Sequence record: NC_047815.1
Strand: one strand, 5' to 3'
DNA length: 64,000 nt
The notes beneath the pieces are model-generated. The model saw only the letters and a program-made list of their open reading frames with translations, did not search any database and had not been told where the DNA came from. A program made the translations under genes and the position numbers. Each line of letters begins with the position of its first letter. The stretch's first letter is position 1. Positions 4,105-52,414 of this stretch are shown piece after piece.

Positions 4105-5562
4105 ATGAGCATCATTTCATTATCGGCCACAGCCGCACAGAAGGACGCTGCCGTCTATTTGTTTGGCTCTAAAGGGCACAGCATTATCGCTGCTATTGAA
4201 GCACTGGCTAAGTCCAAAGAACTCAACACTCCTCATCTGAATGGTCTGATGGCCATGCTGAAAGAAGCGGAAGATGATGAGATCATCAAGTTCAAAAACA
4301 GCGCTGGTGGCAAAAAGTCTATTGAGGCTGCAAAGCAGTTAGTTACGGCCAAGACTCTGGTAACCAGCATCAAGGCGCTGCGTGCTGTTAAGGTTCCGTC
4401 TAAGTGGATTCCTAATCACGATGACGTCAAGAACCAAGCTGTATCTGAAACCGTTGTGCATCGCGCTACTGGTCGCGGTACTCGTCCGAAGAAAGCTGAA
4501 CAGATGGTAAATCCTCAGGCACCTGAAGCAGAGGAGATTGATGACTACGCACAGTACGCAGACATTAAAAATCTAGCTGCCAAAGTTCAGGACGCTCTCG
4601 AAGAAGATCATGAGATGGACGTCAAGATTACTGGTCATGCTGCGAAAGGTAAAGGTTCTTCTGCATATATGGAGGTTAAACAAGGGCGTCGTGTATTAGG
4701 TTCAATCTTTGTTCCTTACGCCGGTCGTCAAGTCCGCAGTGGTGAGTGGTTTAACGCGTCCGAAATCACGATGCAAGTCGAAAGTTTCGAACACAACGAC
4801 ATGGTTTATGATAAGATGAAGGGCTTAGGTCTTATCGACGTTGCTGGGTCAATCGCTGACAAGTTTGCAGAGCTTGCAGAGAAAGCTAACAAAGGTCCAG
4901 ATACAACTTCTCGTCGTAAAGATGGTGCTCGTATGGAAGCAGTAACCAGCGATTACCCTAACAGTTTTAGAATTGACCCAGAGCGTAACCCTGGATTAAT
5001 TGCTAAGATTGATCCTTACTTTAATAAAATTTCAGGCAAGAAAAACAGATCTGTTCAAGCCCGAGGTATTGTCAACTTCTCGTTTGCTACCAAACGTGAT
5101 ATGAACAGCGTGATTAAACAGTTTGACCTGACTTTGAACGCTATCGGTGATGCATTCTATCACCCACCAAGAGTTGTTGGCAGCGTAGTGCCTAGTAAAA
5201 CTGCGGCCAAACGCACTACGACAAATTCAGACCTGTTTACGATCGGTAACGGTGCTACTACCGTTAAATCTGTCAAGCGTGTCAATAACGGTGGCATTGA
5301 AATTCAATTCGCTGGTCCGAAGCCTTCATCAGTTCTCGTCAGTACAGAAGATGAATGGTTAGTAGTTGAGAACAAGCGTGGCGGTCAGAGTGGTTGGGAC
5401 GTTGCTGCGGAATTCTTGAACAAAGCAATCGTTGCCGCAGGTTCTTCTGTTGTTGAGCAGTCAGACCAAGCGGGCTATGAAGGATTTAAGCTGCCTAATG
5501 ATGCGGAAGTTGATAAGGTTATTGCTTATCTCGCCAAACTTAAAATCAACGCAAAAAAGTAA
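4105..5562 (+). CDS. Modular hypothetical protein (485 aa); probable -1 frameshift extends it to 5942
   Basis: GAGGA SD before ATG 4105; ends GCA AAA AAG TAA. Confidence 0.8.
   Translation: MSIISLSATAAQKDAAVYLFGSKGHSIIAAIEALAKSKELNTPHLNGLMAMLKEAEDDEIIKFKNSAGGKKSIEAAKQLVTAKTLVTSIKALRAVKVPSKWIPNHDDVKNQAVSETVVHRATGRGTRPKKAEQMVNPQAPEAEEIDDYAQYADIKNLAAKVQDALEEDHEMDVKITGHAAKGKGSSAYMEVKQGRRVLGSIFVPYAGRQVRSGEWFNASEITMQVESFEHNDMVYDKMKGLGLIDVAGSIADKFAELAEKANKGPDTTSRRKDGARMEAVTSDYPNSFRIDPERNPGLIAKIDPYFNKISGKKNRSVQARGIVNFSFATKRDMNSVIKQFDLTLNAIGDAFYHPPRVVGSVVPSKTAAKRTTTNSDLFTIGNGATTVKSVKRVNNGGIEIQFAGPKPSSVLVSTEDEWLVVENKRGGQSGWDVAAEFLNKAIVAAGSSVVEQSDQAGYEGFKLPNDAEVDKVIAYLAKLKINAKK
5553..5562 (+). other. 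Candidate -1 programmed frameshift site A_AAA_AAG then TAA
   Basis: Heptamer in the correct phase; -1 frame open from 5544 to 5942. Confidence 0.6.
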
Positions 5563-5942
5563 CAAGCGAGCCTGAGTCAACAACGACAAACAAATCTACA
5601 GCAACGCTGGTGGATGAGTTGTCCGAGATGCAGCCTCGCAAGTTCAGTAAGCTGAATAGCTTTGATCGATATAGCTACATGAAGGCACTGCGTGATATGG
5701 TGCACGATGCCATGCCTGCTGATGCCGACATACAAGTTGTATTGACTGACAACGATACGCGTCTGACGATCAGTAATGGTCGTCGCAAGACCTATCAGTT
5801 CTACATCAAAGGCAATAGCTGGATCATGTACGATCAGTCTGACAAATCCGAATCAAAGATGGGTGATTCCATCGATGTTTCTGAATTGATTGAGGTTGCA
5901 CATGAAACAGCAAACACCTCAAGTCTAATCAAGTTCAAATAA
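5559..5942 (+). CDS. Frameshift extension / downstream ORF (track 5610..5942)
   Basis: No convincing SD/ATG; reads VTSEPESTTTNKSTATLVDELSEM...; resembles an internal domain of the upstream ORF. Confidence 0.65.
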   Translation, partial: VTSEPESTTTNKSTATLVDELSEMQPRKFSKLNSFDRYSYMKALRDMVHDAMPADADIQVVLTDNDTRLTISNGRRKTYQFYIKGNSWIMYDQSDKSESKMGDSIDVSELIEVAHETANTSSLIKFK

Positions 5943-5945
5943 CCA

Positions 5946-5969
5946 AAAGGGTACCTTCGGGTGCCCTTT
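5946..5969 (+). terminator. Intrinsic terminator
   Basis: AAAGGGTACC-TTCG-GGTGCCCTTT. Confidence 0.75.
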
Positions 5970-6226
5970 CACCGTTCTGTAACAAAATTTACAATCCAAT
6001 CATAAATAACCTATACAGGCCCGTCAGCCGAGTTGTGTCGTGTTTAACTCACAAGTTACCCTGCCTGTATCGCCACTATTGGTATAACTCTAGTACAGTT
6101 CGGTACGTCCGAAATCGATCTGAATCTTTCCTCTTGTTTTATCGTTAATTAAGCAGAGTAGGCAAGCTACCTACACACACTTATCTAGGCAAATTTGCTA
6201 TCGGTTAACACCAAGAGGAATATTCC

Positions 6227-8041
6227 ATGATCGAAGTAAACAGTTTTGATGAACTTCGCAAAACAGCTCCAAGCAAAGCTGGTGACCTTGCGATTTTGAA
6301 ACGCTACTACGACAAAGACAGCAAGTTCCGTGGCGGCGGTTGGTTCATCGGCTTCCCACAAACAAACGTACCTGCTGATGACGGTGGTATCAATGCCGTT
6401 GATGCAAACAAGAAATTCTTTTGGCAGCGCGTTGTAAACGATCCAGAAGAGATTAACATCATGCACTTCGGCGGCAAGTGCGATGGCAAGACCGATGACT
6501 CAGACGCATTCCGTCGCAACTTCATGTGGGTATACAACATGAAAGACGGCAGTGATACCTTAGGCGTTAAATTGCCTTCAGGTACCACTATGCTCAAGCC
6601 TATGGACTTTACTGATCTCGGTGAAGTACCTGTGTTCGCTGTGTATGGTGACACGCGCTGTACCAAAGGCTGGCGACCACGCGTCAAGATTATCAGTGAC
6701 AAGTCCGACCAAAACGTGTTCAAAGTAAAAGCGCGTCGCATGATCATTCAAGGCATCAACTGGAATGGTCAGTGTACTGCTGACACTACAAAGAACACGG
6801 GCGCCATTCCTCCTGAACTGCGTTCAAACAATCAGATCTTTTTTGAAAACATTTGCACCATGGGTCAATACATTGGTGTTCACTGTTTCCGTGCTGAGAA
6901 CAACGGTGGCTCCGCATTGAAGTTTCAAGACACCATTGATACTTCAATCACAGAGATCTACGGCTCTAAAAGCTATGGCGCCGTGATTGAAGCCAAGTGG
7001 TCAAACACAGTGCAAGCAGGTTGGAATCACTCTACTGCTGTGCGTCTTGAGAACGGTAACTTCCAGTACGGCTACGGTCCTGCTGTGCTTGATATGCCGC
7101 GCATGACTCAGGCATTCATGAAGAACATCTGGATTGAGCACACTCGCTTCCCAGGTAACTTGAATGATGGTCAGTGGGTATTCGAAGGTAACTCTATCGA
7201 GAGTTCTGACAATCCACTTAACCTTGCTAACACTCGTTGCGTTATCAACGGCTTCTACTTCCAGGGTAAAGGTACCATGAATCTGGAACGTGCTAAGAGC
7301 CCTGATAACTGGTTGAGTGGTTACGAGCGTGGTAACATTCGCACAGAGACCTATGGTATCATCATGACCGATAGCTGTTTCCGTGCTGGCTACTACACTG
7401 GCTACAAGATTACGAACAACACTGACCAAGACAAGTGGTTCTACATCGGCAGTTTCTCTTTCCCTAAAATGAATCAGATCTGGGAGATTGAACTGTTGGG
7501 TAAAGCTGGTGGCACCGTACCAAATGCGAAAAGCCAACAGCCTGTCGATATGACTGGTATGGGTCGTCGCGTTATCACGATGCAGCGTTGCAACACTCCT
7601 AACAAGAAAGTGTATGCTGATATGCGTCAAGAAGGCACAGATGGTATTGCAGATGTTGTGTACCAGCGTCTGTGGGAAGATTACGGCAAAGTGTTTATTA
7701 AGCTGAAAGCCAACAGCGGTGACACTATCTTCAATCTGACAACTACTGGTCCAACTCGCTTTGAAGCTGGTCAGTGTACGTTGTTCTCCGACGGTCCATG
7801 TGAATGTGTTGACGATCTGCTGACTGAAATGACAACCAGCGTAGAGAAGAATCAGAAAGACTATGCTCGTCCTCAAAATCGTTTCAGTCTCCACAATGGT
7901 CTTGCTGGCATCGGCGCAAACGAACAGGGTGTGCTGACCATGCAGACGGCAGAAGGTAAGGCGCCGAAAGATCTTACCAAACCAGCGGGATATACCACTA
8001 TCAACATTAACGGCGTTGATCGTGTGATCCCATACTTCTAA
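6227..8041 (+). CDS. AmsF/WceF-like tailspike-fold (beta-helix) glycan-binding/depolymerase protein
   Basis: VNSFDELRKT.P...GGG.F, HFGGKCDGKTDDSDAF (pectate-lyase-3-like N-terminal motif), WNHSTA, MPR.TQ, IWIEHT; no signal peptide. Confidence 0.6.
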   Translation: MIEVNSFDELRKTAPSKAGDLAILKRYYDKDSKFRGGGWFIGFPQTNVPADDGGINAVDANKKFFWQRVVNDPEEINIMHFGGKCDGKTDDSDAFRRNFMWVYNMKDGSDTLGVKLPSGTTMLKPMDFTDLGEVPVFAVYGDTRCTKGWRPRVKIISDKSDQNVFKVKARRMIIQGINWNGQCTADTTKNTGAIPPELRSNNQIFFENICTMGQYIGVHCFRAENNGGSALKFQDTIDTSITEIYGSKSYGAVIEAKWSNTVQAGWNHSTAVRLENGNFQYGYGPAVLDMPRMTQAFMKNIWIEHTRFPGNLNDGQWVFEGNSIESSDNPLNLANTRCVINGFYFQGKGTMNLERAKSPDNWLSGYERGNIRTETYGIIMTDSCFRAGYYTGYKITNNTDQDKWFYIGSFSFPKMNQIWEIELLGKAGGTVPNAKSQQPVDMTGMGRRVITMQRCNTPNKKVYADMRQEGTDGIADVVYQRLWEDYGKVFIKLKANSGDTIFNLTTTGPTRFEAGQCTLFSDGPCECVDDLLTEMTTSVEKNQKDYARPQNRFSLHNGLAGIGANEQGVLTMQTAEGKAPKDLTKPAGYTTININGVDRVIPYF

Positions 8042-51844: not shown

Positions 51845-52414
51845 ATGGCAAAGTCCACTAGCACTGCACTGGTAGCACCGACTCGTATCAACCGCATTTC
51901 TAAAAAGAGCGGTTCTATTTCACAGTCTGCTGCTAAAGCGTCTCAGATGCCGCACGATGTAACTATCACCGCTACTCAGGTTTACGATGTTCAGGGTTTC
52001 ATCACTGAACTGACTGCTGACAGCGTAACTATTCGTCACAAACGTGGCTTCGGTTCAAGCGCCCAGGTTCTGTCAACGTTCCCACGCAGTCAAGTTATCG
52101 AGCTGGTGGGTGATACCGGTACTTTCGGTAGCCTGAGTGTTCTGGGCAACGTGCCTGTTCGTACTCTGAAAGGTCAGTTGCTGTCGTTTAAGGGTACTCA
52201 AGTCATTGCTACTGACTTCGATACCAAAGAAGTTACCGTGCTGAACACAACCGTGCCTGGCGTGTCTATCACTTACGCTGTGAACGAAACTGCCGCTGCT
52301 AAAAAGTATGGCATTGCTGCTCCGACCAAAGGCAAGAAAGCTGACGCGAAAGCAGCGCCTGCTAAAGCTGCTAAAGGCGGTAAGCCAGTCAAGGCTGGTA
52401 AATCAAAAAAGTAA
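51845..52414 (+). CDS. Beta-barrel protein with K/A-rich tail; -1 frameshift would add VSSDEDF
   Basis: GGAG SD; ends TCA AAA AAG TAA. Confidence 0.85.
   Translation: MAKSTSTALVAPTRINRISKKSGSISQSAAKASQMPHDVTITATQVYDVQGFITELTADSVTIRHKRGFGSSAQVLSTFPRSQVIELVGDTGTFGSLSVLGNVPVRTLKGQLLSFKGTQVIATDFDTKEVTVLNTTVPGVSITYAVNETAAAKKYGIAAPTKGKKADAKAAPAKAAKGGKPVKAGKSKK

Follow-up and report, generated by a model that had tools for sequence, protein, structure and literature searches.

A conserved A_AAA_AAG site probably joins gp244 and gp245 of Erwinia phage vB_EamM_Yoloswag through programmed -1 frameshifting

We analysed the final 64 kb of the genome of the Erwinia jumbo phage vB_EamM_Yoloswag (KY448244), hereafter the window, which matches that record at 100% and in which a position equals the record position minus 195700. 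Our subject is the gene pair gp244 and gp245, which GenBank lists as two hypothetical proteins (4105-5562 and 5610-5942). Comparison with related phages indicates that the two are probably a single gene, the second part of which would be reached by a programmed -1 ribosomal frameshift at the heptamer A_AAA_AAG. Such a fusion of two open reading frames (ORFs) had been proposed in an earlier note made from the letters of this DNA, and it is supported here in that the in-phase heptamer, the frame relation and selection on the -1 frame are kept in relatives with a split gene. The mechanism is of a known kind in a new gene family; the frameshift is unannotated in GenBank, and a literature search found no report of it for gp244/gp245.

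The slippery site and its conservation

The upstream frame, ORF A, ends GCA AAA AAG TAA, which puts the heptamer at 5553-5559 in the X_XXY_YYZ phase with the 0-frame stop directly behind it (Table 1). The -1 frame is open from 5544, after a TAA at 5541-5543, to a stop at 5940-5942; it reads KKVTSEPESTTTNKSTATLVDEL... and runs through a Ser/Thr-rich linker into the conserved domain encoded by gp245, here called B. Together, ORF A and the -1 extension come to 612 amino acids (aa; 67.0 kDa). The earlier note had described the end of ORF A and the phase of the heptamer, the open frame from 5544 to 5942 through the linker and isoforms of 485 and about 612 aa; the first two were read again from the sequence, and computation gave 485 and 612 aa. 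Frameshifting would yield peptides from the part of the -1 frame that no start codon precedes; those predicted include VTSEPESTTTNK and STATLVDELSEMQPR for Yoloswag and VVTSAPAAYTPSGK for phage Y3.

By itself, an A_AAA_AAG motif proves little. AAAAAAG occurs seven times on the plus strand of the window, and a second ORF (51845-52414), which served as a chance control, also ends in an in-phase A_AAA_AAG_TAA (at 52405). The heptamer alone is insufficient because the -1 frame of that ORF closes after eight codons; a terminator-like hairpin follows. Among the 43 ORF pairs in the window in which a -1 frame extends at least 80 codons beyond the 0-frame stop, one has an in-phase X_XXY_YYZ in the overlap, and that pair is gp244/gp245 (overlap 19 nt).

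Split relatives were taken to be homologs of gp244 without B together with called proteins that begin inside B, and their junctions were read from the DNA. Five split lineages besides Yoloswag all have an in-phase A_AAA_AAG, a stop zero to one codon further on and B in the -1 frame. L013, a 258-kb European Nucleotide Archive metagenome contig that is 95% identical to Yoloswag in nucleotide sequence and has no indels across the locus, has the same end of ORF A and the same -1 frame. L009 (a 265-kb contig; N-terminal domain 71% and B 87% identical) reads TC_A_AAA_AAG_ATC_TAA, with KKDLSEADSTTGGKSQATLVDE in the -1 frame; L025 (a 260-kb contig; B 50% identical) reads TC_A_AAA_AAG_TAA, with KKVTSEPVSKLGNKSSIQLVDA; and L024 (a 14.8-kb Logan contig) reads GT_A_AAA_AAG_TAA, with KKVTTSAKAS.... 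The fifth lineage, the Y3 group, comprises the isolates Y3 (Switzerland) and pEp_SNUABM_52 (Korea) and six contigs from three studies; its junction is GC_A_AAA_AAG_TAG and its -1 frame KKVVTSAPAAYTPSGKSADTLVDE. In a single further contig, L010, the junction is C_CCA_AAG_CGG_TAG and the open -1 frame leads first through another module and then into B. One other homolog, L012 (Logan ERR13298114, 3800-3830), changes frame inside a conserved 'SWLKKQK', where the A-run is one base shorter than expected and no X_XXY_YYZ is present; an assembly error or a pseudogene is the probable explanation.

The C termini of the upstream ORFs are all different (KLKINAKK, AQWFSSKK, KIKKDAVKK, DQPKKTTAKK, MFSGTTAKK and AGVSSKKI). 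The heptamer is invariant in eight aligned split sequences, and conservation of the DNA begins exactly at the heptamer, with nil 5' of it. Between Y3 and L011, the middle regions differ (ORF A of 310 versus 453 aa) and the cassette that starts at the heptamer is the same. The site and the frame relation are kept across the genera Yoloswagvirus and Sasquatchvirus, and at a synonymous divergence (dS) of 1.17. Conservation of the heptamer and the frame offset in related phages was the check that the earlier note had put forward, and the relatives proved to be either fused in one ORF or split in just this arrangement.

The -1 frame evolves under purifying selection, with an omega (non-synonymous to synonymous rate ratio) of about 0.08-0.10. 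Between Yoloswag and L013, omega is 0.088 for ORF A (dS 0.117) and 0.083 for the -1 frame (dS 0.099); between Yoloswag and L009, at a dS of 1.17, it is 0.098 and the heptamer is intact. Within the linker (5559-5609), the sole substitution relative to L013 and to sequencing run X4 is 5600 A>T, which is synonymous in the -1 frame. L011 and L014 of the Y3 lineage, compared over the 50 -1-frame codons that precede any start, differ by five synonymous and no non-synonymous changes. Homology in the -1 frame likewise starts 5' of the annotated GTG (alignment A1), where NKSTATLVDELSEMQPRKFSKL of Yoloswag corresponds to the internal NGKSQATLVDELSEMQPRKFSKL of pEa_SNUABM_5 and to SGKSDVTLVDEL of others. 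A sequencing error at the homopolymer was considered and rejected, as independent assemblies agree on the length of the A6 run, and so does an ungapped 151-nt contig of run X4 that covers 5527-5677.

About 30 other relatives carry the same domains in one continuous ORF. The N-terminal domain of gp244 shares 46-71% identity with 35 homolog clusters and 57 phage records, and in at least 28 of the 35 clusters the B domain is part of the same polypeptide. A tblastn search with ORF B found a match in pEa_SNUABM_5 inside an ORF of 277 aa that shows 66% identity to gp244 over its first 145 residues. The N-terminal and B domains lie in one ORF of 277-699 aa, with a hypervariable middle, in pEa_SNUABM_5, pEa_SNUABM_30, pEa_SNUABM_17, pEa_SNUABM_36, AD1, Alexandra, JA13 and Yersinia phage fHe-Yen9-02. 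Judged from these sequences, the fused architecture is the norm of the family. The B family is small, as a set of 1.84 billion representatives contains 18 clusters of it; when ORF B was scanned against collections, IMG/VR gave nothing beyond Yoloswag and pEa_SNUABM_5, and the JGI metagenomes gave no match. At the junction of the N-terminal and B domains in its continuous ORF, pEa_SNUABM_5 (L002:6555-6575) has an A6G run, TCG_AAA_AAA_GCA, in a non-slippery phase, and this run may be a relic of a frameshift cassette that was turned into an in-frame fusion.

Proposed mechanism and rival explanations

In the mechanism that we propose, most ribosomes would translate 4105-5559 and stop at the TAA at 5560, giving a 485-aa protein that consists of the N-terminal helical domain and three middle modules. 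On some ribosomes, tRNA-Lys on AAA in the P site and on AAG in the A site would slip back by one base and re-pair on AAA_AAA; GTA would be read next, followed by the Ser/Thr-rich linker and the B domain, to give the 612-aa form. In E. coli, which reads both AAA and AAG with a single tRNA-Lys, no heptamer is more prone to shifting than A_AAA_AAG (PMC5009743). The adjacent stop codon and a hairpin 6 nt downstream would be the likely stimulators. The sequences show the site, the frames, the conserved arrangement, the selection on the -1 frame and the lack in relatives of a start that could be used; we infer that the slip is ribosomal, what the stop and the hairpin contribute and in what ratio the isoforms arise. 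Some relatives make the fused form only, which suggests that the complete protein is the long form, to which frameshifting adds a B-less isoform at a fixed ratio.

A stop codon adjacent to a slippery site can stimulate shifting, as is known from 'shifty stop' work. The earlier view that no strong stimulatory stem is evident downstream has to be revised: a long-range hairpin begins 6 nt past the heptamer and pairs GCGAG.CUG (5566-5574) with CAG.CUCGC (5631-5639), the 80-nt fold having a free energy of -23.9 kcal/mol and a z score of -2.5. The arms of this hairpin are invariant in Yoloswag, L013, L025 and L009, and the intervening loop diverges; in L009, a C-to-G change converts the C.C mismatch into a G-C pair, which gives nine perfect pairs (-30.5 kcal/mol, z -3.2). 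Y3 and L024 form a second class with a different stem, ACCAGUG with CRCUGGU, which begins 5 nt downstream and in which the changes are one-sided and pair-preserving only, and L010 has a compact hairpin (-18 kcal/mol). In both sequence classes the stems begin 5-6 nt past the heptamer with z scores of -2.2 to -3.2, and the pairs are invariant or changed on one side, hence there is no covariation; we regard the hairpins as candidate elements. Conservation of synonymous sites is somewhat higher over the first 30 codons past the site (17 of 22 versus 44 of 80, p = 0.048). An Rfam scan of 5400-6300 gave no match.

It is possible to read the locus as a true split gene, with gp245 made separately from GTG 5610 or from ATG 5628 by ribosomes that perhaps re-initiate beyond the TAA, and we consider this very improbable. 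It would agree with the two coding sequences annotated in GenBank, and a start at GTG 5610 would yield a nearly complete B domain; this GTG is the first start codon of the -1 frame in Yoloswag, L013, L025, L009 and L024 (in Yoloswag no ATG, GTG or TTG precedes it), and ATG 5628 has moderate Shine-Dalgarno-like pairing (-4.9 kcal/mol). However, GTG 5610 sits 47 nt past the stop of ORF A and lacks Shine-Dalgarno pairing, its value of +1.2 kcal/mol being the weakest among 18 annotated starts in the locus, which bears out the remark in the earlier note that this ORF lacks a good start. The codon simply encodes the near-invariant Val of an LVDE motif that is found in in-frame relatives too, and both homology and the synonymous-only change reach upstream of it. 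For the Y3 lineage a separate gene fails as an explanation, since LVDE has GTA for its Val there and a start codon first appears in the -1 frame after 50 codons, within the B domain. From the selection data on those 50 start-less codons, ORF B appears to be translated, and in Y3 not from a canonical start of its own; the homologs thus have no conserved independent start. A split gene would also leave unexplained why an invariant in-phase heptamer stands beside unrelated upstream modules.

Transcriptional slippage, in which RNA polymerase would add one A in the A6 run so that the mRNA encodes the 612 aa in a single frame, seems to us very improbable, although its product would be identical and the data on frame and selection would fit it equally well. 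Slippage on A/T runs is used in bacteria and insertion sequence (IS) elements (PMC5009743). The junction of L010 tells against it, as C_CCA_AAG is a canonical ribosomal heptamer with three A only; so do the X_XXY_YYZ phase in every lineage and the presence of a stop and a positioned 3' stem, which would be irrelevant to a polymerase. Efficient polymerase slippage needs runs of about nine or more, and the A6 run is shorter than this.

The idea of a broken gene or an error, in which a one-base loss from an A7 run (by mutation or as an assembly artefact) left ORF B as a decaying remnant, is scarcely credible: continuous ORFs are the majority of the family, homopolymers are indel hot spots, L012 resembles such a break and pEa_SNUABM_5 retains an A6G run in another phase of its continuous ORF, but the same A6 run and stop recur in the 95%-identical metagenome genome, in relatives whose dS exceeds 1, in isolates of US, Swiss and Korean origin and in contigs of several studies, and ORF B has the same omega as ORF A, about 0.09.

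Several points weigh against a programmed frameshift, the reading that we favour. The support for it is comparative throughout. L012, which is split at an A-run and has no heptamer, shows that the homologs include plain breaks or assembly errors. The Yoloswag hairpin is long and irregular, the z scores (-2.2 to -3.2) are modest, the closing stem is invariant so that covariation is lacking, and the element partly encodes conserved residues. No purine-rich, Shine-Dalgarno-like element was seen on reading the upstream segment 5533-5552 (GCCAAACTTAAAATCAACGC), so a stimulator of the dnaX type is absent. Some initiation of a near-complete B domain on its own may occur in Yoloswag, in which, as in the lineages of its type, GTG encodes the Val of LVDE and ATG 5628 has the pairing given above. 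Finally, split and in-frame forms are interleaved on the B-domain tree, where split forms sit among the in-frame ones at two or more places (four or five under parsimony), and the short isoform would therefore be dispensable in many lineages.

Known systems and evolution of the junction

The site resembles those of E. coli dnaX (tau/gamma) and of the IS3 family (IS911, IS3), which have A_AAA_AAG read by a single tRNA-Lys, a stem-loop a few nucleotides 3', for which gp244 has a candidate, and two products per gene, as predicted for gp244 (PMC5009743). In dnaX the shifted frame ends almost at once and the frameshift product is the shorter one, whereas in gp244 the shift would add a folded domain of 127 aa. 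Unlike the dnaX and IS3 sites, gp244 has no Shine-Dalgarno-like 5' stimulator, its candidate 3' hairpin is long-range and irregular, and its 0-frame stop abuts the heptamer.

A second likeness is to the C-terminal extensions of phage structural proteins (T3/T7 gene 10, Lactobacillus phage A2 and Listeria phages A118, A500 and PSA; immunoglobulin-like, or Ig-like), in which a folded domain is placed on a fraction of the molecules of a mosaic, recombining gene. As described for Ig-like domains, some phages carry the domain in frame and others carry the same domain out of frame (PMC5009743). In contrast to those extensions, B is modelled as an alpha/beta domain without a PDB match and gp244 is not known as a structural protein; moreover, the heptamer, stop and linker appear to travel with the 3' module across several lineages and are not made ad hoc at each junction. 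The tail assembly chaperone G/GT of lambda and most tailed phages offers a third parallel, with a conserved -1 shift near the end of the upstream ORF and a fixed ratio of short to long product. Unlike G/GT, gp244 lies between SSB/RecA-like genes and an exopolysaccharide (EPS) depolymerase gene and not between tail tube and tape measure genes, it has no sequence or fold similarity to G/GT, and many of its relatives need no frameshift. Identity as a tail assembly chaperone was rejected on genomic context, and Pfam and PHROG gave no relevant match.

The cassettes of different lineages are related, as that of L024 has TAACAA in common with Yoloswag and ACCAGTG in common with Y3. Because of this relatedness, the sequences point to inheritance or transfer of the cassette, with repeated conversion to in-frame fusions, a pattern like that reported for the Ig-like extensions of phages (PMC5009743). 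A more tentative extension, which we entertain without favouring it, is that the heptamer, stop, hairpin, linker and B might form a portable recoding cassette that recombines between the hypervariable modular genes of 'hairy' jumbo phages, with repeated switching between in-frame and frameshifted states and an isoform ratio that can evolve.

If gp244 and gp245 are one recoded gene, the genomes of Yoloswag, Y3, pEp_SNUABM_52 and their relatives would have to be re-annotated with one gene in place of two hypothetical proteins, and a well-supported natural A_AAA_AAG site would be added that belongs to none of dnaX, the IS elements and the tail chaperones. With both types of junction and shuffled upstream modules, the family may serve as a natural series for the gain, retention and loss of frameshift sites and for the value of a fixed isoform ratio. 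The two isoforms and the predicted junction peptides would also give a handle on a conserved protein of jumbo phages that are considered for fire-blight biocontrol.

Protein modules and neighbouring genes

Table 1 Features of the gp244/gp245 locus in window coordinates
Feature	Position	Strand	Remarks
ORF A, gp244 (YOLOSWAG_243)	4105..5562	+	485 aa plus TAA; predicted 0-frame short product, 52.6 kDa, isoelectric point (pI) 9.1
Conserved N-terminal domain, aa 1-145	4105..4539	+	Homolog model: helical bundle, then disordered linker
Middle module M1, aa 146-280	4540..4944	+	phmmer E 2.5e-22 to P0002 residues 150-264; alignment A4
Middle module M3, aa 376-485	5230..5559	+	phmmer E about 1e-9 to P0034, P0033, P0024 and others
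Slippery heptamer A_AAA_AAG	5553..5559	+	X_XXY_YYZ phase of ORF A, which ends GCA AAA AAG TAA
-1 frame extension	5559..5942	+	127 codons plus TAA; acidic, pI 5.2
Ser/Thr-rich linker, -1 frame	5559..5609	+	Precedes the first start codon; ends in NKSTATL, homologous to sequence within the ORFs of in-frame relatives
0-frame stop TAA	5560..5562	+	Abuts 3' side of heptamer; 0-1 codon away in every split lineage
Candidate 3' stimulatory hairpin	5566..5639	+	Begins 6 nt past heptamer; stems 5566-5570/5635-5639 and 5572-5574/5631-5633
gp245 (YOLOSWAG_244)	5610..5942	+	110 aa from GTG as annotated; conserved B domain, hidden Markov model (HMM) E 2e-40
GC-rich hairpin with TTCG loop	5947..5968	+	Resembles a terminator; directly 3' of ORF B stop, read from sequence

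Between the conserved N-terminal and B domains, the middle of the protein (4540-5559 and its homologs) is made up of shuffled modules, a mosaicism that is typical of host-interaction proteins. M1 is common to the L009 phage and, more distantly, to the Alexandra/SNUABM_30 type; M3 directly precedes the B domain in frame in relatives of the Alexandravirus type; and M2 is the unique middle module of gp244. A word-index search with gp244 residues 146-485 returned the self-match only, which reflects the sensitivity limit of that search, as phmmer later linked M1 and M3 to relatives.

An AlphaFold2 model of the 277-aa homolog from pEa_SNUABM_5 has a helical N-terminal domain with a predicted local distance difference test (pLDDT) score of 80-90 (residues 7-110); a disordered linker leads from it to the B domain, an alpha/beta fold with a pLDDT of about 90 in which three helices are followed by five strands and one helix. 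Foldseek searches of PDB, AFDB and the ESM Atlas with this fold gave no informative structural match and no Ig match, and a search of BFVD returned family members and same-genome paralogs only. The paralogs measure 382 aa in Yoloswag, where the gene lies outside the window, 325 aa in AD1 and 408 aa in Y3, and tblastn shows a second place of matching in most records. Sequence searches of Pfam, PHROGs and PDB gave nothing usable, the sole hint being a weak PHROG 'tail fiber' match (E 0.02).

Two suggestions of the earlier note were not supported. ORF B had seemed to resemble an internal domain of gp244; BLASTP found no such similarity, the B-domain HMM had no significant match in gp244, and hhalign of the family of residues 146-280 against the B family gave a probability of 0.2%. 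The product had also been linked to virion proteins, and nothing in the analysis shows it to be one. Two giant proteins, P0046 (2550 aa) and P0048 (1951 aa), partly match the B profile at positions of about 53-92, the former 17 times and the latter seven times; these matches may represent a repeated beta-hairpin motif or be unrelated.

At the locus, SSB and RecA-like genes are followed by gp244/gp245 and then by the EPS depolymerase gene, some of the neighbours being hypothetical. A site scan found no promoter-like or terminator-like site between ORF A and ORF B. The two ORFs look like a single transcription unit, apart from the depolymerase gene, because the TTCG-loop hairpin and a promoter-like site 3' of it (5968-5995) come after B. 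The next gene, gp246 (6227-8041), encodes an EPS depolymerase or tail-spike-like protein (phrog_4250, E 8e-216), and a homolog of it lies 3' of the gp244-type gene in L009, L010, L013, L025, pEa_SNUABM_5 and pEa_SNUABM_30, and not in Y3 or AD1. Two to three genes upstream of gp244, the Yoloswag protein encoded at 1973-2998 had no Pfam match at E 0.01; its counterparts at L009:832-1872, L010:43-1107 and L014:229-1248 carry a precomputed assignment to Pfam PF26125 (AcrVA2-like).

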